17,842 nt of DNA from Oopsacas minuta (lineage: Eukaryota; Animalia; Porifera), in the NCBI GenBank assembly GCA_024704765.1, contig JAKMXF010000047.1:1-17842 (forward strand). The letters run 5' to 3'. Both the position numbers and the translations under genes were made by a program. A model generated the notes under the pieces. The model saw nothing but the letters and a program-made list of their open reading frames with translations, did not search any database and had not been told where the DNA came from. Shown here in pieces: positions 1 through 17,842 of the stretch (position 1 is its first letter; each line of letters begins with the position of its first letter).

Positions 1-152
1 CACGATTTGTCTTGGTCACCAAGTGGACATTCGAAGTGCAATTTGTATATGTTCTTTAATTGATTTGTGATTGGTCGTCTTTGTGATTTTACGCAAAAAT
101 GACCACAAACGTAACAGAAATTGTCGGGATGAGTCCTACAATTCCGATGCAT
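1..152 (-). pseudogene. Chapaev transposase N-terminal cysteine-rich (zinc-finger) region, frameshifted
   Basis: Manual translation from ATG 152 gives MHRNCRTHPDNFCYVCGHFCVKSQRRPITN, then after a frameshift LKNIYKLHFECPLGDQDKS(W). This matches the Chapaev pattern C..PD.FCY.CG.F...GDQDK.W. It is too short to appear in the ORF track. Confidence 0.8.
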
Positions 153-401
153 GTTTATAATTTGATTTGCCTGAATTCAAATAAGTAAAGTCATTTATAT
201 TCCAGATAATTGAATCAAAATAGGCATGCTCATATAGCAATTTAGTAACTAGGTAATACTATACTGTTGAATAAATGGATATTGGATTTCAGAATAACTA
301 GACGTGCTAGAGATATTCTGATTGCAGATTCGAGTTCAGCATTCAAAAGTATGCTAAGATAAATGTATGTGATCTCTGATGAGAAATCTTGTTGATTTGT
401 G
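1..401 (-). mobile_element. 5' end of a Chapaev-type DNA transposon (body runs off the left edge)
   Basis: The minus strand begins CACAAATCAACAA at 401 and has the subterminal motif GCTGAACTCGAATCTGCAATCAGAATATCTCTAGCACGTC. A Chapaev-like transposase start follows at 152, and the terminus is flanked by TTA (402-404). Confidence 0.8.
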
Positions 402-2171
402 TTATTCACGTGGTAATTTTCCTCGGAGAGAGAGGACTTACATTTCATAGATCATCGCTCAGGATAGGCGACGTCCTCAATGGTAATTCTCTTGGTTTAT
501 TAGAACTCCTAGCGCATTACGACCCTCTACTGGAAGAGCACGTCAGTAAAATCAAAGTTGCACAACACAAAGGGGAACGATTTCAAGCTCATTAACTTTC
601 ACCAGAATCTCAAAATGAGTTCATTAGCAGTTGTGCTGTTAATGTTGGAAGATACGCTTTGGATGAATGAGAGAGCCTAAAGTACTACTCCATCATGGTT
701 GATGCCACTCCAGATGCTAGCCACATAGAACAAGCGACATTCATCTTGAGGTACCTGATAAGAGAGAATGAGAGTTACATGGTCGAAGAACGATTTCTGG
801 CTTTCGTTGATTGCTGGCAGAAAACGGGGATCAAGATTGCCAACTGAATCCTTGAAATGCTTGAACGATATGGAATACTAATCTCTGATTGTCGCGGACA
901 GGGCTACGATGATGCAGCAAATATGTCTGGCAAATAAAATGGTTCCCAAAAGCATATAATTACTGTCAATCCTTTATGCTTATACTCTCCTTGTGGCGGT
1001 AATTCATTAAACCTGCTTGGAGCGGATTATGCTGAAAGCTGCACCGAGCTGTCACCTATTTTGGCATGGTTCAAAAAACCTACAACCTTTTCTCTAGTAA
1101 TCCTCAACGATGGCACATACTACAACTCCACATTGCATGCTCTCTTCATGGCTTGTCCGGAACAAGATGGATAGATCGTGCCGCTAGTGTGCGGCCATTC
1201 GCAGCTCATCTATCTGGCCTAAAAGTGGCACTACAACAACTCCTATCTCTGAATCTTACCCCGAAGACAACCACCGATGTAAATGGAGCCATAAAGTACG
1301 TGTCATCGTTCAGCTGCGTTGTAATGTCTTCCATATGGTTAAAAGTCCTAGTGGCAATTGACCAAAGAAATCAAATCCTCCAAGCAAGAAAAGCAACAAT
1401 GGATGTTGAAGTGTCCAACTTAAAGAGTCTACTTGAAGACTTAAAAGAGCTGCGTGAGAAATGGCCTTTGATTTTAAGTGAATGTACATTGGTGGCCAGT
1501 TCTGCGAACATTCCGAACGAATTTCCCACCAAGCGCAAAAGGATGCGAGGAGCTCTTTACAACGATCCACAAGATGGGGAAATGGCAGAATCAATTGCAA
1601 ATGATCAGAGTGCTGAGAGCGAAGAGGGACTTGCTTTCAAGCAGAATGTATTTTACGTGATTGTGGATTCTGTTACAACAGATCTAACAAACGCTACGAT
1701 TCCGCAAACAGTATCTACGATCTCTATAGCTTTCTTTGGCAATATTTGAATTTTTCAGAAGGCCAAATTATTCAGGCCTGTGTAGTCTTTGGAAAGAAGT
1801 ATCCTGATGCCAAAACCACTTGGGAGAATAAGTGATTCATCTTAAAGCCATCCATATTGTTAATTTTGGAAATGAATCTTTTGGGTCCTCTCAATCTTTT
1901 GAACACTATAAGAAAATTTAAGTTAGACGAAATACTTTGCAATGCCTGTACTGCATTGAGGATGTTCTGCACATTGCCTGTTACCGTTGCTTCCGCCGAA
2001 CGTTCGTTTAGTGAGTTGAAACTCATCAAGAACTTTCTGAGAAGCACTATGAGTCAAGGAAGACTGAACGATCTCGCAATGTTGAGCCTCGAGGCTGAAC
2101 TTGCAAAGCGTATTGACTTTCAAGACATAATCAATGAGTTTGCTATGAAGAAAGCACGCAAAGCTTTCTGA
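402..2171 (+). pseudogene. hAT transposase, central and C-terminal part (DUF4371-like core plus hAT dimerisation domain), with stops and frameshifts
   Basis: Motifs in order: FLGERGL..GNSLGLLELLAHYDP; SIMVDATPDASHIEQ (D at 701); CRGQGYDDAANMSG; CGGNSLNL (degenerate CxxH); FSSNPQRW; TLPVTVASAERSFSELKLIKNFLRSTMSQGRLNDLAMLSLE. ORFs 389-595, 1066-1749 and 1857-2171 are its fragments. Confidence 0.93.
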
Positions 2172-2496
2172 ATTACACTGACCGTAAATTTTTGTATTTT
2201 TCTGTTCTTGGCTACAATAACTCTTGGAGTATTAGCTTTGTAGTATTTGTTTTTCATTTATATTACTTAACACAATAAACTCTATAGCTATATAGCTATT
2301 GGCTATTTGAAAATTCATAGCTATAAGAGTAGGTAAATAGGATTTTATTTATTCAAATTTATAAATATATATATAATAATACAAATGCGATAGTTTGCGT
2401 TTTGTTTATTCACTTCACGATAACGGAACAAAATATTAAAGGGGGCCCGCACCCAAAATGATGACACGGGGCCCGCTCGCGCTCTCGACGGCCCTG
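405..2496 (+). mobile_element. 3' half of a hAT DNA transposon, ending in a 15-bp TIR
   Basis: A transposase relic is followed by an AT-rich 3' UTR, two subterminal GGGGCCCG motifs and CTCTCGACGGCCCTG (2482-2496), the exact reverse complement of 14348-14362. Confidence 0.95.
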
Positions 2497-2504
2497 TGGA
2501 TATG
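2497..2504. repeat. hAT 8-bp target-site duplication, copy adjacent to the 3' TIR (TGGATATG)
   Basis: Identical to 14340-14347, which abuts the 5' TIR. hAT elements make 8-bp TSDs. Confidence 0.93.
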
Positions 2505-3187
2505 GTATTGCGAAATCTTGCAGAACCTTGACTCTGAGCGAAAAAACGATTTCTTGTAGGATTACCAGTGTTCTGTTGTTGATGGCTTCAGTGTAAACTA
2601 TTTTAACAGTAAGATTTTCCTCTTTGACTTGATGGAGAATGTCTTCAAAAAGCTGTCCATATGAGTTCCCCACTGTTGGTACAGCTCGCATGATGTGACC
2701 ATTTTTTCGAAAAATATCTTAGTTCGATGTGGAAGCAGTATTACCTGCTTCTGTTAGGGTTTCATTTCAATTTGGATTATTTTCTAAATGCATCTTATAT
2801 TGTATGCTTCTAAACTCGACCATTTCAGATCTTAATTCTCCAAATCAGGTAGGACCATAAAAATGATGTAAAAGTAGTCTAAGATAGAAGCACTTGAAAC
2901 TGTGGGATGGACTGTATGAACTCTGCCCAGAACATCACATCGCAAAATTCGAGCGAAATCCGACTCCTGTTGTACCTAGTCTATGTCCTGAAACTTTCTA
3001 GTGATACTAGGTGTAGTACTTTGGAACGGTAACGTATAGCAAATTCTTGGCAAGTCATCTTCCTGGCAGAGCTGGAATTAAGCTGTATGAGTGGAATTTC
3101 TAAGTGAACCCACAGATGTACTACAGTGGTGTATCTATCATGAATTGGGGACCTGAAGAGCCTCCAGATTGCGTCAATGGTATAGAG
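2505..3187 (-). pseudogene. Helitron Rep/helicase relic: end of the Rep region and linker before the helicase
   Basis: AIWRLFRSPIHDRYTTVVHLWVHLE in ORF 2981-3253 matches Helitron EAxWRIFxFPIHERxPxVVHLxVHLE. EDILHQVKEENL..YTEAINNRTLVILQEIVFSL..LQDFAIP is in ORF 2410-2691 and is cut by the hAT TSD. Confidence 0.85.
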
Positions 3188-3637
3188 TAACCAATTAATA
3201 ATATTTATAAGATCTAAATTTCCTATTTTTGAAAAGGGTAGTAAGCTGTGCATTTGCGTATAAATTTGGTCTTATATTTGACAAGCCTATTTGACCTCGT
3301 ATCCTAAATCAATCAATGTTTTTTGTCATCATGTATTTTCTAGCACACATACCTAATTAAGTACGTAGATTATGACCTCATCACAAATGTCAATTGAATT
3401 GGACCAATTTTGATTAAGCTTGTAGTTGTAAGATCTGACTTGCCCTGAGATTAATATTTCGGAATGTTAAGAACAATTCTGACTGAGTTGTTAGCTTACT
3501 CTTCGTCCCAATAATCATAATGTAAAATAATGGAATCCACCTATATATATGCAGATTGATTACAATGTTGTTTTACCATGAATTAAGTGAATATTTGGGA
3601 TTAGATCCTCGGCCAGATCGCCAAGGATCATAGGCCA

Positions 3638-3655
3638 AGACCGAGTACTCGGTCT
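3638..3655. repeat. Perfect 18-bp palindrome AGACCGAGTACTCGGTCT
   Basis: The sequence equals its own reverse complement. Confidence 0.9.
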
Positions 3656-4189
3656 ATTCATGCTTAATAGAGCTACCTGCTTAAATAGGCCATGACCTTT
3701 ATTCCTCTTAATCTGCTCAAACTAGAATGCTCCCCGATGTGACTCTATTAATCTAGGTCCACTCTAGTCAACTTGGTTTATTGCCCCGCCCGTAAAACCT
3801 TACTATTCAATAATCAGAATAAGAAAATGAAATTTCAAATGCTGAAAGAAGTTCTTAAAGAAAGAGGAAACGCAACCTCCTGCAAATATCAAAACTCTCA
3901 TATGTTATCAAAATAATTCTCAAGCTCCCGCCAATGTACTAGTCATTTTGGGATATCTATACTCATATATTTTAGAGATGTTTAATAATGTTCGAAATGT
4001 GATAAGCCACTCTATTAATATGAGGATGAGCCCATATTCCTTATATGCATCTAACTTATGCTCGTGTTTTAGGTGGAAGTAAACATCCCGAACAAAATAT
4101 AGAAACTTTTTCTTCTTGTTATACATTGCCATTGATGCTAATTTCAAGGTGTAGTTAAAGCATATTATAATAAATCTTCCTATCCAATT

Positions 4190-5208
4190 CTATTCGATAT
4201 AACCGCCTTTTGTCTTACCTGCAGCTTTAAGTCGTCCTTGAAAGGTTGAACAGATTTACGGAATTCTTCTTGCGGAATTTCTCCGATTCTGTAATCAAAG
4301 CCTTCCGCAGAGATTCCAAATTTCTATGCTGAGTAGCACAGGCTCCGCTCTGTAAAGTCCCCCTGATGGAATAGTCTAGTTGATTCAAATCCTGACTTAA
4401 AGGAGGCCATTCTTCCTTGAACAAAAAGTCAGAATTTTCCCCTAAAAGCCAGGATTGAATTTCTTTCGAGGCATGCTGGCAAAGAGTCTTGTTGGAATAT
4501 CAAGGGTGTAGTTTGAACAAAGATCAACCAGCAGATTTGATTACAGTCTCAGGAATCAACTCTCTATATGTTTGCGAGTTAATTTTGACCCCTTGTGGGA
4601 CAAATCAATTTTGTCCGAGAATCTGCGGACACCCCAGCCCAGATCATCACAGAAAGCGGTCCTAGCACTTGATCGATGAATTTAATGCTCTCAGGGATGT
4701 CTTTGCATGACGACGCAATAATTCTATCATTTTGACGGTTAGTTGCTTCTTCTATCGTGAAATTTTTTCGTCCGAAAACAATGTTTGTTCATAATCTTAA
4801 TTTACGAGGCGCCGCAGAAGCCTTTGCACCTTTCAAGTCTTCTTACCCGAAGAGTGGGAGTGAGATGATGAACTGTTTGCCGTTTAAATGAGTTAAGTCC
4901 CAGGTTTCCATGCGTCACCTTTGCAATGTTTCGCGATTAACAGAGTACTCCCTTGCCATCCTTCCGGATTGACCGCCTGGGATTTCGGCGGATTTCACTA
5001 CGGAGGTTTCCCTTAGTGATCTCGTACGAACTGTAGTCAGTCGGCCAGAACGAGGCTTGTCCTCCACACTTTTGGTATCGTTGTATCGTTTAATAGTACG
5101 ATAAATGAATAATCTGTTGATCTTTTCACTTTTCACCTTTTTCAAAATCTCGCTCTGTGTCCTCCCGGTTATAAATAATGAGATAATTTTTGACCTCTCT
5201 ACTTCCAT
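4190..5208 (-). pseudogene. DD37D-type transposase pseudogene (about 340 codons, several frameshifts)
   Basis: N-terminal HTH region MEVERSKIISLF..RTIKRYNDTKSVEDKPRSGR. Later FQQDSLPA..EEWPPLSQDLNQLDY has 37 residues between the Asps after restoring a 2-nt deletion. It ends GGTTATATCGAATAG (GYIE*). Confidence 0.85.
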
Positions 5209-5369
5209 GTTGAAATTTCTGATTTTATGAGTATATAGATTTAGATTACTGTTTGAGCACAACCGGAAGACATATATGTTAAAATATAAATGAGAGAAAT
5301 CGTAATACAATAAATTTGAGACGTATCAGATCTATTAGAACTATATATCAGAACCTAATTGTCACCCTG
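4190..5369 (-). mobile_element. Tc1/mariner element of the DD37D (maT) type; 5' TIR present, 3' TIR not found
   Basis: The minus strand starts CAGGGTGACAATTAGG at 5369, flanked by TA (5370-5371). A transposase relic follows. No matching TIR is visible after the stop at 4190. Confidence 0.85.
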
Positions 5370-5371
5370 TA

Positions 5372-6978
5372 TTGCGAATGTTTGTAATGGGTACTCGAGA
5401 AGGAAACTCATCTCATATCTATCCACAATTATCACTTGATAAATCTGCCTTTCTTTTCGATTCGTTTCAGATCGGTAAACTAAGTATTTAGACCTTTGGC
5501 GTACATTACTATCTGAAGATCTCGAGTTACTAGGCTACAATAGTGTACTAGACTTCGGGCTCAAATTAATTTGCTGGATGAGGTTCGTATAATTCATGGA
5601 GAATTTCCATGTGGAGTAGGTATTTCTTACACCAGACTACCCATCCATACAGTTAAACGAATTGTATCTAACTTATGTCCTGATAACCATGTCTTCTTCT
5701 TAAAGTTCGAATATCCGATGGCTAGATGGATCTGGGTGTCATCGAGTTTACCAGCAAGCTATATCTAGCCCTGACCTCTCGACTAAAACTTCATTGTATT
5801 TGGTTTCAAGGTTAACGCAATCATAAATGCAAATAATCATACCTTATGGAAACTTCATCATCCGAATTCTTCATTTTGCACTAGACCAGTTGCCCTCTTA
5901 GCCATTCCAGAAAATGAACAGAGTGTCAAGTTTTGATCTACTCACTGATACATAACTAAGCTTCAACTATTGAAGAGAGTGATTTGTGTTTACACAATGG
6001 GAATCCAGGGGTCAAGATCATAAGATCTCATTTCGATATAAAGATGGTAAAAATCTTAAGCGGTTCTGGTTGTGCTAATTGTCAAATGTGTACTGCAACG
6101 TTCAAACAGATAAACGATATTAGCATAGTACATAATGGCCCTCCCATAAATGGGACAATCCACGATGCTTGTGATGTATTTGACGAGGTTAATGAGTAGG
6201 AATTTTTGTCTTTGCCAACAAATCAAATATTCAATTTAAACACAAATCGATCTCAAAAAAAGATGTCATATCAGCTTCTCCTCTACGTGCATATTTGAGA
6301 ACATTTAGTTGGATCCTATTATTGATTTGTCATTTACAATGTGGTCCTATTCAAAAATAGGTCACCAACTTCGCCCAAAATTCTTGGAGTCAAAAGATTT
6401 ATTACTAGCCTTATTGAAGAAAAACTTAGTATATCAATTGACACACCATCAGTTCAAGGCGAACCACCACATCCGGAAATGTTGTTCAGAGATGCTTCAC
6501 TCGTAGCAATTATGCTGTACGAGATTTTATCTATTGCATATTGACGGTTGTTCCCCAAGAGACACATCAAGTTGCTACTACAATCTTTAATAATTTGAGT
6601 GCTATCCTGAGATTGTATAATAGCAACAGGAAAGTGGATACTGAAGGCCTTGATAATGTATGCCGGGAGACTTACAGATCAATTTTGATCAATTTTTCAT
6701 GAGAACATGTAACCTCTACTCTACATAAACTCCTAGCCCATGAACTACAAATAATTGCAGATCAAAATGATGGCTTTGGCTTAGAAGATTTGTTTGAAGA
6801 AGGCCTTGAATCTTGTAATAAATTGGTCAGGCGATACCGTGAGAGACTCTCAAGAACATTTTGCTTTGAGGATAATGTTAAAGATGTGTTCGTCAGGCTT
6901 ATTTCTCAAAGTGATCCAATTTTAGCATCCTTTCGTAATATTACCAAAACGATTCGGAGCCAGATCTACCTGAGTTAA
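5372..6978 (+). pseudogene. Transib/RAG1-like DDE transposase core, with frameshifts and stops
   Basis: Ordered motifs: (L)DGSGCHRVYQQ (D 5725); HPNSSFCTRPVALL (5859); HFDIKM..SGSGCANCQMCTAT (D 6035, CxxC); SASPLRAYL (6271); TTTSGNVVQRCF (6463); TLHKLLAH (H 6724, H 6739); EEGLESCNKLVRRYRERLSR (E 6808); DVFVRLISQSDP. Confidence 0.85.
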
Positions 6979-7339
6979 AGAGCTGTCAAGATATTTTGGT
7001 GAATTCTCTAATTATACATACGTTATAGTTTGTAGTTCAGTGAACGGTAGGTCATTTTCAACAAGAAATGTGGTTTCATAAGTTGGTAAAAATGTGCATT
7101 TAATAGTGTTAATAATATCAAAACATAAAACATTCAATTTCTGAACATATAGCTTACAGATTGGCTTAATTATAATCGGTAAAAAAATCAGAATATTTTT
7201 GAATGTGACAATGATGTCATTACTTTCACACCAAAGACTTAGAAAATTCTAGTTGCGTCAATCGATTCCTTGGGTACGATTCCCCATATGTCAATAATAT
7301 AATTTAATACGTTACCTAATACCCTTATACCTACTTCCA

Positions 7340-7365
7340 GCTTTTTGCCATTTCGTGTCACTGTG
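7340..7365 (-). mobile_element. 3' terminal inverted repeat of the Transib element, RSS-like
   Basis: Reading inward from 7365: CACAGTG ACACGAAATG GCAAAAAGC. It lies about 390 bp after the transposase stop, and an unrelated hAT reading frame starts immediately outside it. Confidence 0.75.
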
Positions 7366-7850
7366 AAGGAGTAAGATCGCATATCTGCAAAGGTCTTTAA
7401 CTGAGCAGCAGAGGAAATTCTTACTGCCTACTTCTCATTCAAGGAATACTACATGAGTTAGTTCCGCTGTAAGTGAACTTATTGGGAAAGGTATTAAAGC
7501 TATCACTGATGGTGAATTTGTGAAGGAGCGTATTCTACTGTGTTAGGTAATGTATGTCGAGAAGAATGAGATCTATTTGCCAGGATTAGTCTCTCTGCAA
7601 GGACCGTGAATCAACGAATTGAATATTAGCCTTCAAATATCAGAACATCATTCTACATACTCGCTTAACAATTTGAATTATATTCAATTGCACTTGATAA
7701 GAACTGTTTCCACTGATATTGCTCCAGGTGCATTCTAATTAGAGGAATTATTCCAACAATTGACATTACAGAAGAATTAGTAATCTATTTCCAGGAAAGG
7801 ACACCAATGCAAGTATGAATATATTCCAAGTAATTCTAATTGTCTTAGAA
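7366..7850 (+). pseudogene. Charlie/SPIN/Buster-type hAT transposase fragment (GTF2IRD2-like family)
   Basis: SELIGKGIKAITDGEFVKE (about 7470-7530), ISLSARTVNQRIE (7585) and RGIIPTIDITEEL (7741) match family motifs KPFTDGEFVKE, ISLSARTVxRRIE and RGVxxxFxITEEL. Heavily frameshifted. Confidence 0.75.
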
Positions 7851-7875
7851 AACGTACAGTTTAATCTAAGTAATA

Positions 7876-8085
7876 CAGTAGACCCTCGCTAATCCGAACA
7901 GATGTGTTCAGATTAGCGAATTTGTTCGGATTAGTGAAGTAATACATTTATATGGGGAATTATAAACATTATGCAACTCAAAATTATAGGAATAAATATA
8001 AGTAGTATGTATTACAAATCAGATTATGGTACTGTAAGATACAATACAAACCTCGCTAATCAGAACTTCACTAATCCGAACGAAA
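7876..8085 (+). mobile_element. pogo/Tigger-like MITE terminus remnants
   Basis: TA|CAGTAGACCCTCGCTAATCCGAAC starts at 7876. CTAATCCGAAC/GTTCGGATTAG occurs repeatedly in both orientations, and a second similar head (CCTCGCTAATCAGAACTTCACTAATCCGAAC) lies near 8051. Confidence 0.5.
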
Positions 8086-8099
8086 CATTACTACCTTGG

Positions 8100-8191
<92 letters not shown>
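8100..8191. repeat. (TAC)n microsatellite, about 30 units, ending at an N
   Basis: Read directly from the sequence. It generates the poly-Y, poly-L and poly-V ORFs. Confidence 0.98.
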
Positions 8192-8192
8192 N
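8192..8192. other. Single N, possible contig join
   Basis: The N separates the microsatellite from the middle of a mariner coding sequence. Confidence 0.6.
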
Positions 8193-8525
8193 CTCGTGAG
8201 TTTTTAGAGAATTATAGGATCGGAACGCTACCCCACCCACCCTACAGTCCAGATCTAGCCCCTTGCGATTTTTGGTTATTCCCAAAGCTGAAAGATCAAC
8301 TTCGTGGGAGGAGATTTTTCAGCAATGAAGAGTTGACCGGGGCACTTTTCTTAGCAATTGAGGAGATACCCAAAGAAGAATGGAAATTGTGCTTTGATAC
8401 CTGGTTTAAAAGCATGAAAAGGGGTATAGAGTGTCAGGGTGAGTATTTTCAAAAAATATGACCATATATTCTGTAATACCTATTATATAAGTATATAAAC
8501 GGCAAAACTTTTCGAGTGCCCCTCG
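8193..8525 (+). mobile_element. mariner element, 3' fragment with TIR
   Basis: LPHPPYSPDLAPCDFWLFPKLKDQLRGRRF..GEYFQKI* (stop 8461), then AAAACTTTTCGAGTGCCCCTCG|TA, a mariner-type end. Confidence 0.9.
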
Positions 8526-8666
8526 TATACGTATATGAAAATATTGGTGTTAAAGTATTAGTTCTCATTGACATTTAGCGTTTTAAAGTCCGGAGGACCA
8601 GAAACGAAGCACTTGAAAGAATATTAAACAACTGTGTATATATCAGCGTATTTTTGGATGCACACC

Positions 8667-8681
8667 GGTTGAGAACTACTG
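8667..8681 (-). mobile_element. Isolated Charlie/SPIN-like hAT terminus
   Basis: The reverse complement CAGTAGTTCTCAACC resembles the CAGYGGTTCTCAAC TIR of this group. No partner end or TSD was found. Confidence 0.45.
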
Positions 8682-10238
8682 CAGTAAATATTAAAGTTCG
8701 ATCAACAAATGAGCACCATATCATTGTTTAGCATCAAATGTTGCGAAACAATCACAGATCTAAGACTTGATAGTATAACTATAAGTCACATTATGGCATG
8801 CGTAAGAAACCAGAACAAAACTTTGATGATCTATTAAAGGTGTTTTAATCAGCAATAGTGTGTAAAAAATGAAGTTTTATTAATGATAGTGTTAGTCACT
8901 AGGAAGTATGAACCACAAAACAATAGAAATGCACATAGTATAATAAAATGAAGATTTCCCATACGATTTTGCTTATAAACGATAAAATACAATAACTTGA
9001 AAATTTTTGCCTCGAATTTGGCTATCTTCATCATTTGCCCTACTCTATCAGATACAAATACCAGTATTTGTGAGATATTTTAAAATCAACGTGAGGTAAG
9101 ATACAAAATTAACCCTCGAAGGATGGTTATCGCAGAAAACCTTGTTCCTTGGATAATTTTAACAATCGCATTTTAATTCGAACTATCAAGCTATAATGTT
9201 TCTGCCTCATATATTTCCAATATTCTAGGAATTTGACCGTCTTGAACAAGTGTTCTCACCATTCCTGCCCTCTGATTTGGCACACAAGAATTCTACTAAT
9301 ACTTCTTCTCAACATTTAACTCTGAAAGAATCGATGCCCATTTCACAAATGGATCTTATTTCACATAATCTCATCAACGAAATGGATTATCGAAAACTCG
9401 AAAAAGAATTTTTTGAGTTGTCCTTATCTTATCACCAGCAGTGTATTACTATTGAAAACTATAGATCAGTTCATAATCACGTAAATCAATTAATATTTGA
9501 CAGAAAGTATATAGTAACTTTCTCTATAACTGCAATAGATCCCTGATTGATGGTTTGTTTCTCCTAAAATCATTTATTTGAATAAGGACTGTATTGATTA
9601 ATGCCTATAATCTTAGTATATGTATTGTCTCCACTGATGTCTTTGATGCGTTAAATATGTTTTTAAAATACTAATAGACCATTTATATATCTTCATTCTA
9701 TAATGGAGTGATTCATAATGCTGATATATTTCTAGAATTATTGGGTTATGATATTGAACGCATCAATGACAGCACTGGAAACACGACATAGATAAAGAGA
9801 ACTTTCGATGTGTGTGACTTTTTCATAGTTTTTCATATCCGCTCATTTAATCGAATATTCTTTATTTACGATAGTAATAACGCTGAGCAACAATTTTGGT
9901 ATTTGTATCCACCTGTGGCAATTTGAGCTGTTCTAGTTTGATTACTTAAGGTTGATCTCGCTTATAGGCTCAATATATTTTTTCACATAAAGATTAGCTC
10001 ATATTCAACTAGTGAATTAGAGGAATTCCCAAAATATTTACAAAATCAGTATTTGAATGTGATCTTAAATAGATGTATATTGATAGATTTTCGAATTATA
10101 GTGGTGCTGAGCCTCATTAATAAGCGGAATGCATACTATTTGAGCGAACGTACTATGTGCACTGGGTATGATTTCTCTGGATTGTACTTGAATAATATTC
10201 TGGATTTTTTAGTTGTAAGGGCGCTATAATATATTGTA

Positions 10239-10264
10239 CTAGTAGAACTCCGCCCTACGCGTAG
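10239..10264 (-). mobile_element. Candidate Helitron 3' terminus
   Basis: The minus strand reads CTACGCGTAG (10-bp palindrome), then GGCGGAGTTCTA, then CTAG|T. The hairpin is shorter than typical. Confidence 0.35.
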
Positions 10265-10871
10265 ATTTCCGATAGTTCCAGCGAAAGATATATGTGCGAT
10301 ATCGCATTATGAGGTTTTATACGCTACGCGTCTGTCGAAGCAATTTGATTTAGCTTGTTCTCTGGAGCATTCTTTTCCATTAAATAATTTCATGCACATT
10401 TGTAATAAGCACAGTTCAATTTCTAGCTAGGGTGAGAATGTATAAGAACAACTGGCACTGTTGTTTCTTCCATCTATAACTGGTTAGGTTTGAACGTAAA
10501 TAATTATTGTGAAGCATATATCTAATGAGATATTAAGCTTTAAGAGAATATCTAATCCCCAAAATCTTTATTCTGGTTAATTTCTTCTAGTTAATTCATG
10601 GAGCGTTAATGTTAATATGGTATTGTGAGTTTTTTTCTGCAAACTTGTATCATGCTTAATCGAACTCATCCAACTATTGATTGTATTCCTTAGGGAGTAC
10701 ATGTGATAATTAAAAATTTACGAAATTCACGTCAAGTATCTGTATTGGAATGTTATGTAGTACATTAAAATTGAAATTAACTTTTTGATTAGTGATTGCT
10801 TAAATTTTTGGAAGCATTCTTCTAACTAACAAATTTCCTCAACAAGTTGCCATGATGTGATTGATCATATT

Positions 10872-11450
10872 CAGCTGCGGATCCAGGAATTGCTGGTTTG
10901 GAGGGATAATTATCTGGTTGTGGTTCTGGGGGGCGCTGTGGACGACAAGTCCTATTTTCCACATAAGATTCTTTGGCATTCTACTGTCAAGCGACTTCGA
11001 ATCTCGGAATTATTTCTCTCAACTTTGTAATAGACATTTTGGGATGTAATTTTTCGGTTTATTATGTAAGTACATTATCTCATTGAGTATATGAGCATGT
11101 TTTATAACTTGTATACTTTTGCACTTGCACTATGTAATTTTCAAATAATTAGGCACCTATAAATTTCTTTCAGCTTGGACAAAACTTAAGCATATCAAGT
11201 GTTGTTCATGCTCATAATGCCTGTACTAACCCACCGTTACGGTTCAAGACACTACCATCCTTAGAATACAAGGTGCATACCTGGATCCTTGGAAATGTTG
11301 GAAGATTTTAGTGAAAGATGCGAGGCGAAATTACGGGTTGGAATTTTAGCAGTAATTAGTGTATCGGCCTGAATTTCGAATACCACTATGATTTCCTATC
11401 ATTTAAATTCATCTTGGTAGGGGAATATATCCCCCCTGGATCGGCCACTG
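10872..11450. mobile_element. Non-autonomous hAT element (MITE), 579 bp
   Basis: TIRs CAGCTGCGGATCCAGG and CAGTGGCCGATCCAGG match at 13/16. Flanks ATCATATT (10864-10871) and ATCATTTT (11451-11458) form a 7/8 8-bp TSD. Confidence 0.8.
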
Positions 11451-12714
11451 ATCATTTTAATCACAGACTTTATTGATAGAGAATACAATTTTTAGACCAA
11501 TCAAAATGCACGATAAAACTGACCATTGGTTCGGATGCAAGTATCTAGGACTAATGGGATGAAGGGATATTTAATTACAGGACGAATCTGAGTGGTTTAG
11601 ATATATAAACCAACAGATCTTCAGACTTACATTCCATTTTCCAGATTCTTCATTGTATCCCACCATTGCTTAGGTAATTCAAAGGTTTTATAGATTACGT
11701 TGCCTGCATTCCTTGTCTCATTTGGGTAGTCTATTATGCACTACGTTTACCTCCCATAATGTATTTCATGTGTAGTGCTGTACATTATTTCAGTTTGGCC
11801 CAAAATTAATTCAAGTTATTTGTATGTTGTTGTGCTACGTCGCTGATTATGTGATGGATGGTTCTCTATTTCAGTTAATGATTAGGATATTGCAGTGTTG
11901 CAAAGGTATGACTCAAAGTTGATAATACCAGACTTAACGGTTTCATGCCATGTTGTGTCACAGACATAAAGATTCCTACCATATTCATACCACAAACTTG
12001 CAAGTTTGACCTACATACTGAAATGTTCATGACAAGTTCCTTCCATATTTTAGGTAATTATATTTTTATATCCCAAAACCAAATCTATGAACTTAGTACT
12101 TGACCTAGCAACACTTTTTTCATGTTCTATTCTACTCCCATATGGATATGCATTAAGTACTCTGATAATTCAGCTGTAGAATGTGTATTCCAATTTGATA
12201 GAACATGAAATATCAATCTGTTATGAAAATTGTCAACTATAGTACAAACCTTTGCATGGATTTTATTCTCTCGTCTGATCAATCAATTTTGGAAGTGAAA
12301 TGGTTTGCATCTGTGACTATGATTTGAATGCAAATTATTATAATTATATGCATTATTGCAATGCAAGTGGCTACACAATATTACTGTTTTGTCATATGGT
12401 TATCAAATATACAGATTTCGACTTGAATAACTTCGATGTGAAGAGCAACTAGAATTAAGGTGGAGACATCTTTAATTTTGTAATTAACAATTTTAATTGA
12501 CTCATTTTTGTTATCCTAGAATTTCACGAATTTCATTCCTACTCCTCTTAACTATATATATATTTAATATTCTAATACCAAGACCATAAATTGTAAAATT
12601 CCCCATTTTGCCTCTTTAGGCGGTTAACTTTTTCTTATCCAAACGGGGTGGTAAATATTTATAGGAAACTACTTTAGTACCTCTTTCGCATGGTCAAGTT
12701 AGAAAATGGAAATA

Positions 12715-13080
12715 AGTGCATTATACAGGATCATACGAGACTAACCCAAGTAACACTGTTTTTTATGTCATTCTGTATTTTCTTCCACAGCTTTTGACTC
12801 TTTTTAATAGTTTTGATGAAAGGATTACTTACATATCACTGATAATTGCATTATCAAGGTATTAATATGCGAACTTCAGATAAATTACTGTGAATCAGGC
12901 TCTATGTATTTCCTTGGCATTTCTATCAATGGGATTTTGCTTCGTATTGGTTTCTTATGCCTCATAGTTGTGGTAATTATGTTTTCTTTGGCATTTTTGT
13001 CCAGGAAATTAGCTTTTATGTTCTCATATACTCGTTGGTGTGTTGTCTATTTCGATTTTCTAGTTGGTAAGATCATGCCT
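12715..13080 (-). pseudogene. Probable non-LTR retrotransposon (LINE) fragment, C-terminal to the RT core
   Basis: With frameshifts it reads IKANFLDKNAKE..KYI..LIHSNLS-SSHINTLIMQL..SRMILYNALIS. This resembles KYLGVxIDxNLxWxxHIxxL..LYxALI of CR1/L2-like LINEs. Very degenerate. Confidence 0.4.
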
Positions 13081-13369
13081 ACTAACCTGTATTTCTGGGT
13101 TTGAATCCTTTTTTCTTTTGCACTGCAATTTACAAAGCCTTAAATACCTCCATTAAGCAATTTTCTTTATGTTATTACTGTGTAATCATATCACTCATTG
13201 ATATTTACGTAATCCGAATAATGAAACTACACTTCATTGTTTGGAAATTTTATACCATGTATTTTAGTTGGAACTCATGCCGTGACAGATCACGGAGGTA
13301 CCAGGTACTTCAAGTAGTTATATCTTGGAATTTGACTAACCACCTGGCTATGGGTCAATTATTTCCTTG

Positions 13370-14339
13370 GTGACCCTTATTCCTCGTCGATTTAGAATTT
13401 TGTCTCAAGGATATGTGCATGATGTATTGATAGCTAGCTGTTTTCTATTATGCAGTTTAGGTTGGATATGAGTTTACTAGGAAATTAATTTGCGCTTCAA
13501 CTCTGAGTGTCAAATTGGAGGTGGTAATCTAGATGGGTGTAATGATTTAAGAAATTCTTTTGGATTTTGGGTTTCTGTATTTGACTCAATACAGTATCAA
13601 TAGAGTTGTTGATGATAATATTGCAAGGTAGTTTGTTGCGCAGAGAGATATTAATTGCTTCAAATTTCTCATTTCTTGGGCCAAATAGTCCTTACTGAGC
13701 CCTTATTTGTCATTGAATGGTGATGTCATTTTTGATATACAGAATCCATCAACTCGCCTTCTCTCTGTCTGAACAATGTTTCCAAATCCTACTGGAAAAG
13801 TAATCTCTCTATCAACAGGTACAGTTGTCAGGGTTCCATTACCAACATGTAACAGTGGATCTGATAATTTCAACTTTCAAGATCATTTGTTGATAAAGTA
13901 AATTTCTCAAAATGACTCCACAGATTCTAGCATTCATACATGAATCTAATTTATCAGCTCGATTCTTCTCGGTATAACTTGCAGTGTATATCCGAAATCT
14001 CCTGCGATGACCATAGTCACACCTCCAAATAGATTACTATTGTTTCTGATATCTAGCCCAATCGTGTTGCTCCAATCAATGAGAATGCACCTCCAAGAAC
14101 TTTAATATTTTGGCTGAGGGGATATTGATAAGTATAGTCCTGCCACTTCCACCTGGAGCATCCAGAAAAAACAATTACTCCATTCTCTGACATAATCCTT
14201 GTAGATATAGCGTCTATACGTCTGATTGCTCTAGTATTAGGAGTGGTTCATATCCTGTAATCAATTATATTAGTTGTTCTATGTGATAATTCGTTTCTTG
14301 CTCGAATGGCGGATTTGTGGAACTGCCTACTGTATATAC
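13370..14339 (-). pseudogene. Helitron Pif1-like helicase relic
   Basis: ETNYHIEQL..EPLLILEQSDV; Walker A-like LDAPGGSGRT (14136-14165); DIRNNSNLFGGVTMVIAGDFGYTLQVIPR; LLHVGNG; KEFLKSLHPSRLPP (13511-13560). There is an internal deletion after Walker A. Confidence 0.88.
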
Positions 14340-14347
14340 TGGATATG
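14340..14347. repeat. hAT 8-bp target-site duplication, copy adjacent to the 5' TIR (TGGATATG)
   Basis: Identical to 2497-2504. Confidence 0.93.
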
Positions 14348-15523
14348 CAGGGCCGTCGAGAGGGGGTAAGCGGGGTAATTACCCCGGGGCCCGAGAAATT
14401 CTGTCTGTGAAGGTATGCATGGACTTTATTGGCTGCATTAAGTAGACAAGTAAAGGGGAAACAAAGACATCACTGAACAGAGTCATACCTTTGTTATTTA
14501 ATCCTTCCTAGAAACCCAGTCATGACTTTCTTTGTATCAATTATACTTTTTTTCCATTACTAATTCATTTTACGCGATACGATCCAAACGGCAGGCACGC
14601 GTAAATAGGCTAAAAACCTTTTTGTTTCTTTGACTGTTTAGAACAATAAGTCACAACCTGTGATGTCCTCTTATCAACATAAATCTAGTGCCAAATAAAG
14701 GCGAGATAGGCAACAACTTGTGATAGAAGGAAAGAAAGGCTCTCGTTCCTTGTTTGATGTTGGCGTATTTATAGACAACGAATTAGGATCAGAATTAGAG
14801 CTTGAACAAGAGTCACTAGACATCCTCGCCCAAAATGTCGTCATTAAACCACGAAGGCAAGAGATAGAGGTAGAACTAACCGACTCTCGTGTTTGCCATG
14901 CCGCGGATGATGTTCTAGAAGATGAGGCTGATGTCAGCGTTTACGGCGACAGAAATATGAATCAGAAACCCCTTACCGAAGATGAGATCTCAATGAGAAT
15001 GACCACTTGTGAAGAGCATGATACAATGATAACGCCGATCTTACGATTCAGTTTTGAGGTCGGGACCTTGACTGGATCACCAACAGCAAATGATTTGGAA
15101 AAAATTGTCATGGCTGGTCATGTTCCTCATCCAAATCAATTTCCATGCGATGTTGCTGGTAATAAATTTCCAATCTCAGTTCTCAACGTCAAGAAACAAA
15201 ATGGTGAAACAAGTAGTCGAGGTTGGATCGTTTTCAGCCCTACAAAGGTGGCAATTTATTGTTTTCCATGTAGACTTTTTCCCATAAAATCGATTTTCCA
15301 ACACATTCGTTGTTAGCATCTCCTAGTGGATGGAATGCCGAGAAGGAGTGGAGGAAATTAAGGGAAAGACTTCCTTACCATGAGAAAAGTTATTCACATA
15401 AGAAGTGCTACTTCTCCTGGCGTGAACTCCAAATACGCATAGAAAATGATGCCGGCATAGATGTCATCCTCGAAGAGAACTTTTTGTCTGAAGCTGTAAA
15501 ATGGAAGCAGTTGCTCACACGAA
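14348..15523 (+). mobile_element. 5' half of the same hAT transposon
   Basis: TIR CAGGGCCGTCGAGAG (14348-14362) and a subterminal GGGGCCCG are followed by the transposase N-terminus, which is cut by a Chapaev-type end at 15527. Confidence 0.93.
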
Positions 15524-15526
15524 TGA
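14663..15526 (+). pseudogene. hAT transposase N-terminal part with TTF-type zinc finger
   Basis: ATG 14663 reads MSSYQHKSSAK* (stop at 14696) in frame with ORF 14720-15316, which contains RGWIVFSPTKVAIYCFPCRLF. After a frameshift, ORF 15310-15546 has WRKLRERLPYHEKSYSHKKCYFSW..KWKQLLTR. Confidence 0.88.
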
Positions 15527-15656
15527 CACAGGTCAACAAAATTTAACTTCATTTTCTCATCAAGTATTAGATTGACATTTTCTAAGCTAGTTTTTTACGC
15601 TGAATTAAAATCTGCTTTCAGATTCTTTCCAGCACGTCCAGTTTTTTTCCATCTAC
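15527..15656. mobile_element. Chapaev-type terminus facing the hAT 5' half
   Basis: CACAGGTCAACAAA..TTTCTCATCA..GCTGAATTAAAATCTGCTTTCAGATTCTTTCCAGCACGTC is homologous to the inverted end at 301-401. It is flanked by TGA and truncated by an N. Confidence 0.75.
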
Positions 15657-15657
15657 N
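15657..15657. other. Single N, possible contig join
   Basis: It lies between two Chapaev-type ends whose outer flanks belong to different host elements. Confidence 0.6.
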
Positions 15658-15985
15658 GAACAACATTCAAGAAAGTCAAACAAGAGAAAATTTTTAGATT
15701 GAATAGTGCTCATATTACATGTCTATAGTATCACTTTCTTCCATTCATATTAGTAACAATTATATCATTATTCTTTGTGAATGAAATGTTGATATTTTCA
15801 GAAATTTAATTGATCCAATCTAACATATAAGGGTTGAAACCAATTTTGTTCTTTAAATGTAGTAACAGGATTGTGAGGTAACTTGACGTATTGGGGAGAA
15901 ACTGACTAAATAATCGGAATCAGCAACACAGAATTAGTATATATCAGTTAACAAAATCAATACAACTAAAAAGTGTAGGCCTGTG
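15658..15985. mobile_element. Second Chapaev-type terminus, facing the mariner
   Basis: GACGTATTGGGGAGAAACTGAC..GGAATCAGCA..GTGTAGGCCTGTG (reverse complement starts CACAGGCC) has the same roughly 100-bp subterminal layout as the other ends. Confidence 0.6.
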
Positions 15986-15987
15986 TG

Positions 15988-17000
15988 GTCAAATGTTTCG
16001 ATAAATTCCCCTTTGACTTTATACATCGTTTCCATCGTTCTGGTAACTTTTCGAGCCCTGTGGTACAGAATTCTTTAGGGGTCCCTTTTTCCCACTGTTT
16101 TATTCATATTCTAGCTATTTGAAATTCTCAAATCTCTTCCCTCGAAGAGGTCTCTTCATCTTTCCAAACAGCCAGTAGTCGCTGAGAGGGAGGTCTGGAC
16201 TATACGGGGGATGAGGGAGGTATTCGAATCCTAAGTCGTCAATTGCAGCCATTGTCTTGGAGCTTACATGGGGCATTGCGTTGTCATGTTGCACCTATAC
16301 GCGAGGTGTCGACTTGCCTCACCTCTCACTTTTAATCGCTTGACTCAATCTTTCAATTCGTCAACGTAATATTCACTGTTTATGGTTGCTTCTCAGGCAA
16401 CCAGTCGAGGGTATAATTCCTTGCCTATCCCAAGATTCTGTACCATTCTCTTCCCTGCTAATTTTTCGGCCTTTACCTTGATGGGTTCAGGTTTATCACG
16501 TCTCTTCCACTGCTTTGATTGAGTTTTGCCTCTAGTTCATAGTAATGGAACCAAGTTCATCTCCCGTTACTATGCGATCCAAAAGTCTTCCTCTGCCTTG
16601 TATCTTGAAAGTAATTCTTTGCTAATTCTGACCCTTTCGCGTTTTTGTTCTTTTTTGAAAGAAGTTTTGGGACTCAACGCGCAGTTACCTTCGACATTTC
16701 CAGATCTTCAATGATAATCGAGTGTAGTGTGGCTTTTGATATTCCTTCCCTCTCTTCTAACTCTCGCAGGGTTATTCGTCTGTATTCATCCAAAATTGTT
16801 TGGACCCTCTCGATATTACTGCGGGTTTTTGAGGAAGTCGGACGACCTGGACGAGGGTCTGCGTGGAGGTCCTCATCGCCATTATCTAAACGTTTGATCC
16901 ATCATATATATGGTGACTTTCGAAGGACATTCATTACCGAAAATATCCTGCATTTCGCGAAGAATGTACAGGGTGTAACGAAAGTGTTGATACCCTAGAT
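15988..17000 (-). pseudogene. mariner (DD34D) transposase pseudogene, almost full length, no TIRs visible
   Basis: EMQDIFGNECPSKVTIY..DPRPGRP..*VPKLL..DRIVTGDE..QHDNAMPH..LPHPPYSPDLPLSDY has 34 residues between the Asps. The C-terminus runs into the Chapaev end. Confidence 0.92.
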
Positions 17001-17041
17001 AATTCATTAAAACTTATAATATATTTGAGTGATTCGAAATA

Positions 17042-17842
17042 TTATCGGTTTATATATGAACCATTTCGTTCTAATACAATTCTTATACGTTCCGGCATGC
17101 TAGCTACTAAATTCTCTAAAATACTTGCGCTAATGTCTCTCCATGCTGATTTTACTGTTTCTATTAGCTGTTCCCTCCTTGTGATTTGGCCCTCTTCATT
17201 AACCTTCTCTTTCACTATTCCCCAAAGGTTTCCAATAGGGTTTAAGTCAGGGGAGTTCCCAGGCCATTCAATCTTACGCCAGAAAGCATTAAAATGATCT
17301 TGACACCACTTCTGCGTTGCATTGGCCATGTGTTCGGTGCACCATCTTGCATGAAGATGAATTCGGACATATTTTCTAACATTGGCCTCTCCAAAACCAA
17401 TCCATTATTTCGACAACTGTGAACTGCCTCCATACAAGTCTTGGCCAAATTTAATTTAGTAGTATGCACTATTTATTGATTGCCCTTGAGGCATTATATG
17501 CAGTTCTGAAAGTGCCTGATGTGACATCATGCCCCACACATGAATTTTTGTGCTGGAAACTTAACTGAAAATACCGAAGGAACATCTTGCTTATTCTTTG
17601 CCCAAACCCGATTATTTTGTTTGTTTGGCGTTGCAAAAGCTGGAAGGGGGACTCATCTGACCAGATAACCTTTTTCCATTCGTTAACTGTCCAATTTTGA
17701 TGCTCCCGAGCAAAGGTCAGACGATCTTGGATGTTCTTTTGAGATAATCGAAGTATTTCTTGCCTTTTGAAAGACCTAACACCCACAGATTCGGTCAAAT
17801 GATGATACACACACATGAGATATAGGATTGCCTCTATTCTTC
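17042..17842 (-). pseudogene. Tc1-like transposase pseudogene with DD37E-type spacing, running off the right edge
   Basis: RLTFAREHQNWTVNEWKKVIWSDES..FMQDGAP, then after a frameshift WPGNSPDLNPIGNLW (Gly codon GGA at the catalytic Glu position). Confidence 0.9.

Follow-up and report, generated by a model that had tools for sequence, protein, structure and literature searches.

How does a single transposon come to be written in a genome record as two halves in reversed order, with the duplicated target site facing inward? The arrangement occupies the first 17,842 bp (C47:1-17842; hereafter the window) of a 67,219-bp (67-kb) super-scaffold of Oopsacas minuta, where a genome search placed it. 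An earlier sequence-only reading had described one hAT insertion in a circularly permuted locus and offered three explanations: (a) head-to-tail duplication, (b) a circle that re-integrated, and (c) mis-ordered contigs. The permutation is confirmed as written. Explanation (c) fits best, and for (a) there is no assembled second copy. The swapped halves probably reflect a mis-ordered piece in the scaffold, and such an assembly ordering error is more likely than a real duplication or a DNA circle. That reading had not taken in the nested 2.29-kb element described below, the position at the start of a super-scaffold, or the coincidence of both single Ns with breaks in homology.

Pieces and joins of the window

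The Oopsacas minuta assembly was built by hybrid assembly with SPAdes, followed by SSPACE, Pilon and GapFiller, from Illumina data that include Nextera mate pairs (PMC10280926). The window is not continuous sequence; it comprises three or more pieces that were assembled separately (a, b and c in Table 1). These meet at gap marks at 8192 and 15657, each a single N in the interior or at the edge of a high-copy repeat and within 1 bp of a break in repeat homology. At 8192, the (ACT)n run abuts position 969 of a 1.31-kb TIR element: 8193-8528 matches L071:533-1843 at element positions 969-1311 (94.8% identity), and upstream of the break seven other copies have in common at least 47 bp that are missing from the window. 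This element has TIRs of ~32 bp and a weak match to DDE_3 (E 0.031). At 15657, the match to the nested element (TE-X) stops at 15656 and a different, 335-bp family begins at 15653-15658. With both marks so close to a homology break, it is unlikely that the Ns are ambiguous bases within unbroken sequence.

In SSPACE and GapFiller output, a single N probably stands for a negative-gap or unmerged join, a usage to which the homology breaks, and open frames that end or begin at further single Ns of the assembly in three cases, lend indirect support. A literature search for the equation of a single N with a negative gap found no support and confirmed only the GapFiller merge rule, by which a gap is closed only when both extensions merge (PMC3446322). 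If the swap is indeed an ordering error, single Ns in this assembly should be read as a warning of unclosed joins. Because both of those in the window fall at homology breaks, the swapped order of the hAT halves rests on two unclosed joins. As is characteristic of a scaffolding-order error, piece b is flanked by these Ns, not by overlapping sequence, and homology ends right at the marks, inside repeats.

Table 1 Features of the window, with positions counted from the start of the super-scaffold
Feature	Position	Strand	Remarks
Piece a	1-8191		bounded on the right by N 8192
Piece b	8193-15656		bounded by N 8192 and N 15657
Piece c	15658-17842		begins after N 15657
TE-X, last 405 bp	1-405	+	scaffold starts inside, at ~TE-X position 1887; precedes hAT 3' half
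hAT 3' half	406-2496	+	decayed transposase, dimerisation domain, 3' TIR 2482-2496; 91% identity to C277:534137-536168
TSD copy adjoining 3' TIR	2497-2504		TGGATATG
Flank Y	2505-4152	-	single copy in assembly; elsewhere only distant 66-81% matches
Two repeat-family copies	4153-7365		1.2-kb family 4153-5371, 2.0-kb family 5370-7365; many 86-92% matches
(ACT)n microsatellite	8100-8191	+	~30 units, right end of piece a
N	8192		unclosed join, piece a / piece b
Tc1/mariner-like element, right-hand 336 bp	8193-8528	+	1.31-kb element, cut off at N
Flank X	11451-14339	-	single copy; putative decayed PIF1-like helicase; elsewhere only distant 67-80% matches
TSD copy adjoining 5' TIR	14340-14347		TGGATATG
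hAT 5' half	14348-15522 (end 15521-15523)	+	5' TIR 14348-14362; 92% identity to C277:536179-537219
TE-X, first 134 bp	15523-15656	+	directly after hAT 5' half
N	15657		unclosed join, piece b / piece c
Content of piece c	15658-17842	+	335-bp repeat to 15986; R2 family 15989-16968, cut short; R3 1.35-kb element from 16967, then 1320 N

A single hAT insertion

The element is a hAT, with an 8-bp TSD, short TIRs and a dimerisation domain (Pfam Dimer_Tnp_hAT, PF05699, at 1857-2168; E 4.1e-9; 36.5 bits, cut-off 21.4). Its gene is decayed, with many stops, and open pieces of 227 and 198 aa, examined for an intact DDE/RNase-H-like core, gave no Pfam match. The 15-bp TIRs, CTCTCGACGGCCCTG and CAGGGCCGTCGAGAG, are 100% complementary and occur once each in the window, with TGGATATG outside each end. 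The claim that these are two halves of one hAT in reversed order holds: in a near-full copy on another contig (C277:534114-537219, minus strand), window position 15523 corresponds to 536179 and 412 to 536168, 10 bp apart, and the halves adjoin. The extents first assigned to the halves were near-exact. The 3' half starts at 406 instead of 405, because TE-X ends at 405, and the 5' half ends at 15521-15523. An origin of the halves from different elements was considered and rejected, since the C277 copy has them side by side and a single TE-X insertion spans both.

A preference of the family for the target TGGATATG had been named beforehand as an observation that would speak against a single event. 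The 11 other copies of the hAT have exact 8-bp duplications in seven cases and near-identical ones (5-7 of 8 bases) in four, and these are 11 different sequences, none of them (0/11) TGGATATG. One insertion, not target preference, is indicated because the 11 copies carry 11 different duplications, and the perfect TIRs, the identical flank, the C277 copy and the in-frame flanks agree with the single event originally proposed. The chance of this 8-mer at one given site is 2.0e-5. It is found four times on the plus strand of the window against 0.36 expected; the extra occurrences, at 12143 and 13463, are taken as chance. A ~3.26-kb hAT inserted once, in a decayed, putatively PIF1/Helitron-like gene, and duplicated TGGATATG. 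The same hAT family is also present in normal order at C349:119930-122025, where it is interrupted by R3.

A nested transposon between the halves

The "break" between the hAT halves is a nested insertion of TE-X, a 2.29-kb TIR element with at least 90 copies in the genome, whose two ends match each other at 18/22 positions of the TIR. At its 3' part, at least 40 matches with 95-98% identity end at 402-405, and the terminus ...GTGTTAT is common to 10 copies, followed by differing flanks. At its 5' part, among the matches listed, 39 at 95-98% start mostly at 15522-15523 and all extend to 15656. The two ends are paired ~2.29 kb apart on the same contigs in ~18 copies (e.g., C329:55861..58127), and the element is assembled gap-free at 11 other loci. 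The target duplication of the nested insertion is ambiguous: its two sides read TCACACGA and TCACGT, and 11 bp of the C277 reference are absent.

TE-X inserted later, in the middle of the hAT, giving the order X - TSD - hAT 5' half - TE-X - hAT 3' half - TSD - Y. Because the TE-X ends adjoin the two hAT halves, the natural order is expected to be 8193-15656, the TE-X interior, and then 1-8191. We also considered that TE-X might resume after a further nested insertion at 15657; no remainder of it was found in the stretches covered, 15658-17842, C47:17001-27000 and C47:37001-47000, and the genome-wide searches brought up no further hAT 3' half or flank Y.

A putative host gene

Flanks X and Y rejoin in a single frame, and this frame continues to a PIF1-type P-loop: a minus-strand open piece of Y (2497-2718) reaches into the target site, and the P-loop-like FFLDAPGGSGRT of X lies ~54 codons from it. 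The Pfam match of X to PIF1 (PF05970; E 0.0025, 17.9 bits) is under the cut-off of 25.9. No Rep (HUH) endonuclease domain was found upstream: four open pieces of Y gave no Pfam match, and a 74-aa piece of Y compared with 1.8 billion protein representatives returned only spurious repeat proteins. Pfam, a solved-structure search and this protein search gave nothing usable as protein-level proof of X|Y continuity; at the DNA level, other Helitron copies yielded only 65-80% fragments. The remaining support, the in-frame rejoin and the P-loop, suggests that X and Y may have been continuous before the hAT arrived.

Origin of the swapped order

With the first 134 bp of TE-X at the end of piece b and its last 405 bp at the start of piece a, the true order would be b, ~1.75 kb of unassembled TE-X interior, and a. 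On this model the scaffolder would have placed piece b (7.5 kb) after piece a (8.2 kb) when it belongs before it. The two appear to be below the typical Nextera mate-pair insert size, and the opposite orientation of mate-pair and paired-end reads, a known source of confusion in contig order, may have contributed. A single misplaced piece would account for both odd junctions. If so, the public assembly of Oopsacas minuta has a concrete flaw that can be checked: 8193-15656 belongs before scaffold position 1.

Genome-wide, each hAT half and each of the flanks X and Y has one 100% match only, and no second copy of any of them was found anywhere in the assembly. Nor was a duplicate unit found in C47:17001-27000 or 37001-47000. 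No continuous sequence runs over the novel junction. Its sole candidate site, N 8192, has (ACT)n on the left and a repeat truncated internally on the right. A join in SSPACE requires at least five linking pairs (-k 5), and the a-to-b link should therefore have some read support, which may be poor. That this join is real, through either a recent head-to-tail duplication (unit 17.4 kb or longer) that the assembler collapsed or a circle-derived re-integration, is conceivable though rather unlikely. Were it real, the topology would be readable only because the nested hAT/TE-X fossil spans the unit boundary.

The best-surviving alternative is a real head-to-tail tandem duplication of b + TE-X + a, in near-identical copies collapsed by the assembler, with its junction at (ACT)n and mariner position 969 and the scaffold extending from the TE-X of copy 1 to the TE-X of copy 2. 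We regard it as doubtful. In the middle of such a duplication a permuted order of this kind is expected, and pieces a and b would be genuinely adjacent, at a new junction that is a natural contig breakpoint. It is also an observation against an artefact that TE-X is unbridged here though bridged at 11 loci, which hints at a local oddity, for instance a cyclic path in the assembly graph, the product expected from a real tandem duplication; collapse of the copies would make such a cycle and so explain the difference. However, none of the unique parts is assembled twice, and the junction is backed by an N, not by continuous sequence. The b-to-c join would, moreover, still be false, since TE-X halts at 134 and is not resumed in the 20 kb of C47 inspected. 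A swap of this origin would be an ordinary large tandem duplication of modest interest.

Considerably less probable is a real single-copy rearrangement in which the scaffold is correct as written. An X...Y segment with the nested hAT/TE-X would have been circularised, reopened in TE-X and re-integrated with loss of TE-X 135-1886, or a tandem duplication would later have been trimmed by two deletions. No assembly error is needed, and the cut of TE-X at 134, the scaffold start at ~TE-X 1887 and the missing interior would all be accommodated. But several rare events are required, the record does not reach the left side of the supposed integration, and both breakpoints coincide with Ns and the scaffold start, as limits of assembly yield; the circle route, explanation (b), further needs both unclosed joins to be true. 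Finally, two independent, separately truncated hAT copies sharing TGGATATG by target-site preference, for which the excess of this 8-mer in the window might speak, are scarcely credible given the different duplications of the other 11 copies, the ~10 bp between the halves in the C277 copy, both ends of a single TE-X insertion on the two halves, and flanks that rejoin in frame.

The analysis also has a practical side. Since a single insertion has to have outward-facing ends, the logic of nested transposons detects ordering errors, cheaply and without reads. If the swap is an ordering error, "inside-out" transposon halves in the Oopsacas minuta assembly are best taken for faults of scaffolding as long as no reads contradict this.

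Comparison with known systems

The locus resembles an ordinary nested transposon insertion in that a hAT with an 8-bp TSD and 15-bp TIRs is broken up at a single point and the ends of a TIR element adjoin its halves; it differs in the swapped order given to the halves in this record and in the missing interior of the nested element. Zhang and Peterson reportedly described tandem direct duplications that arise when the maize hAT elements Ac/Ds transpose in an alternative way (reversed-ends or sister-chromatid transposition). As in those duplications, a host segment lies between hAT ends that face each other, and the arrangement implies a head-to-tail unit. Unlike in them, the inward-facing ends share one TSD of an ordinary insertion, the hAT has decayed to a pseudogene (~91-92% identity to its nearest relative), and the second unit is absent from the assembly. 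With the re-integration of extrachromosomal circular DNA, the locus shares a circularly permuted chromosomal segment, but nothing points to a circle, and the supposed closure is a single N with a microsatellite on one side and a truncated repeat on the other. A probable counterpart is the error of contig order made from mate pairs by SSPACE and similar scaffolders (Sahlin et al., bioRxiv 10.1101/025650): pieces of 7-8 kb are joined without overlap at repeat edges, Nextera mate pairs and SSPACE were used for Oopsacas minuta, and the order is swapped with orientation kept, as expected when the type of read pair is misread.

The hAT element and its single insertion

The window occupies C47:1-17842 and so forms the opening 17.8 kb of C47, a record of 67,219 bp; the assembly totals 61.46 Mb in 365 records. 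Its two hAT halves lie in swapped order, with terminal sequences CTCTCGACGGCCCTG and CAGGGCCGTCGAGAG perfectly complementary over 15 bp and the 8-bp target-site duplication (TSD) TGGATATG immediately outside both ends, as the sequence-only reading had correctly described. We assign the element to hAT because of a Pfam Dimer_Tnp_hAT match (E 4.1e-9) and the 8-bp duplications that flank copies of its family elsewhere in the assembly. This 8-mer would be met by chance at any single specified position with a probability of 2e-5. TGGATATG also occurs on the + strand at 12143 and 13463, inside flank X (outside the 5' TIR), making four occurrences in the window versus 0.36 expected; the extra copies are taken as chance.

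Coordinates of features in the window and of reference copies (C, contig; L, locus fetched from the assembly)
Feature	Position	Remark
hAT 15-bp 3' end	2482-2496	one occurrence in window
hAT 15-bp 5' end	14348-14362	one occurrence in window
TGGATATG (TSD)	2497-2504; 14340-14347
Dimer_Tnp_hAT match	1857-2168
Flank X	11451-14339	outside 5' TIR
Flank Y	2505-4152	outside 3' TIR
TE-X 3' end	1-405
TE-X 5' end	15523-15656
TE-X copies with both ends	C329:55861..58127; C344:106264..108546	examples
2.0-kb repeat family	5370-7365	>30 copies at 84-91% identity
Low-copy repeat	7873-8190	also C49:90696-91000, 90% identity
Tc1/mariner-like family	8185-8528	1.31-kb copy, L071:533-1843
335-bp repeat and R2	15653-16968	also L042:1501-2798 (C332:977016-978313), 89% identity
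R3	16967-17842	1.35-kb copy, L043:1502-2850

In a genome-wide search of the assembly, each hAT half had a single match at 100% identity, and one near-full relative was found (C277:534114-537219(-), 91-92% identity). With this copy as reference, window positions 15523 and 412 align to 536179 and 536168, and the two halves thus meet with no more than 10 bp between them. The 8-bp flanks differ in all 11 other copies having both ends (CATATATA, GTGAGCTG, AATGTGCT, GCAATTTA, CCCTCAAC, ATACTATG and others) and none is TGGATATG; the check for target preference proposed in the earlier reading thus indicates that such preference is absent.

When the hAT and one TSD copy are deleted, a minus-strand open piece (2497-2718) continues in frame to 14339 and below, and a decayed P-loop, FFLDAPGGSGRT, lies in the same frame 54 codons past the rejoin. 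A neighbouring open piece gives a weak PIF1 match (E 0.0025, under the Pfam cut-off). Given the in-frame rejoin, the P-loop and this match, the hAT probably inserted into a PIF1/Helitron-like relic; Pfam and protein searches did not find a Helitron Rep domain. The single insertion event proposed from the sequence holds, since the flank is unique among copies, the halves abut in C277 and the flanks rejoin in frame. The same observations contradict two independent insertions, leaving that explanation practically no weight.

A second transposon nested in the hAT

The window begins with the 3' end of TE-X, a TIR element 2.29 kb long that is present in at least 90 copies (95-98% identity). This part has at least 40 matches listed at 95-98% identity, its boundary is sharp, and the flanks differ in ten copies. 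The hAT 5' half is followed by the TE-X 5' end. Among the matches listed, about 18 copies carry both parts on one contig, in normal order and ~2.29 kb apart; the inverted repeat between the TE-X ends scores 18/22. Two minus-strand open frames of TE-X (227 and 185 aa, L056:1-1905) matched no Pfam family.

Because the TE-X ends adjoin the two hAT halves and are paired ~2.29 kb apart elsewhere, TE-X inserted into the hAT, and what look like "halves" are the hAT sequence on either side of this nested insertion, not the product of breakage. The ordinary structure then reads X, TSD, hAT 5' half, TE-X, hAT 3' half, TSD, Y, which would place 8193-15656 first, followed by ~1.75 kb of TE-X interior and then 1-8191.

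Other repeats

A weak HTH_Tnp_Tc3_2 match was obtained for the 1.35-kb element R3. Five records (L043, L044, L045, L047 and L048) carry copies of it that are 99.2-99.8% identical, which suggests a very young Tc1/mariner-type family, possibly still active. The 335-bp repeat and R2 (1.2 kb at full length, of which the window has the first ~0.98 kb) are usually found separately. The window and C332 share one arrangement of the two, at 89% identity, so the composite itself was copied. The Tc1/mariner-like family is bounded by ~32-bp TIRs (TACGAAGGGCACTCGAAAAG...). It numbers at least 40 copies (90-97% identity), and the window holds only the last 336 bp of the element. The low-copy repeat contains internal inverted repeats and terminates in an (ACT)n run. 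It recurs on C49 with its microsatellite, and the run is therefore part of the repeat and not purely a gap-filling product.

Single Ns as probable joins

Two single Ns occur in the window, at 8192 and 15657. Left of the first stand ~30 ACT units; right of it are positions 969-1311 of the 1.31-kb Tc1/mariner-like element, and the conserved sequence that seven other copies share upstream of this breakpoint is missing from the window. At the second, TE-X homology extends to 15656 and the 335-bp family starts at 15653-15658; the remainder of TE-X is absent from 15658-17842, C47:17001-27000 and C47:37001-47000. Homology shifts at both Ns, so each lies within about a base of a break in a high-copy repeat, whereas ambiguous bases arising at random would not be expected to fall there. 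Three further single Ns were examined (L065:5167 = C47:22167; L007:3144; L010:855). Open frames terminate or start at each of them and no long one reads through, which points to joins or missing bases more than to one ambiguous base. A 1320-N run (C47:17843-19162), either a scaffold gap or a withheld stretch, directly follows the window and cuts R3 after 876 of its ~1350 bp.

SSPACE and GapFiller can leave a single N at an unmerged join, and for this reason we take the single Ns as joins that failed to merge. The assembly was built with SPAdes from Illumina and corrected PacBio reads, followed by SSPACE super-scaffolding, Pilon polishing and GapFiller gap-filling (PMC10280926). GapFiller closes a gap only when two extensions merge (PMC3446322).

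Origin of the swapped order

The swapped order depends entirely on the join at 8192. The sequence-only reading had called the locus circularly permuted; the order is indeed swapped in the record, but with the pieces joined at single Ns and homology breaking there, the permutation is most likely a scaffolding artefact. Probably the 7.5-kb piece 8193-15656 was wrongly ordered: it would have been written after the 8.2-kb piece 1-8191 instead of before it, a single misplacement that would make both odd junctions. In its favour, the genome-wide search found no second copy of either hAT half, X or Y in the assembly.

A collapsed tandem duplication with a unit of at least 17.4 kb is considerably less probable. 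It would explain why TE-X is unbridged here when 11 other copies were assembled without gaps, but the join at 15657 must still be wrong, and the duplication junction has no sequence across it. Re-integration of a circle, or a trimmed duplication, needs no assembly error but is improbable, as it calls for several rare events with all breakpoints at assembly limits.

In line with the favoured ordering error, both pieces are shorter than typical Nextera inserts, and Nextera mate pairs were included in the O. minuta Illumina data (PMC10280926). The opposite orientations of mate-pair and paired-end reads are a documented source of confusion in contig order (bioRxiv 10.1101/025650).
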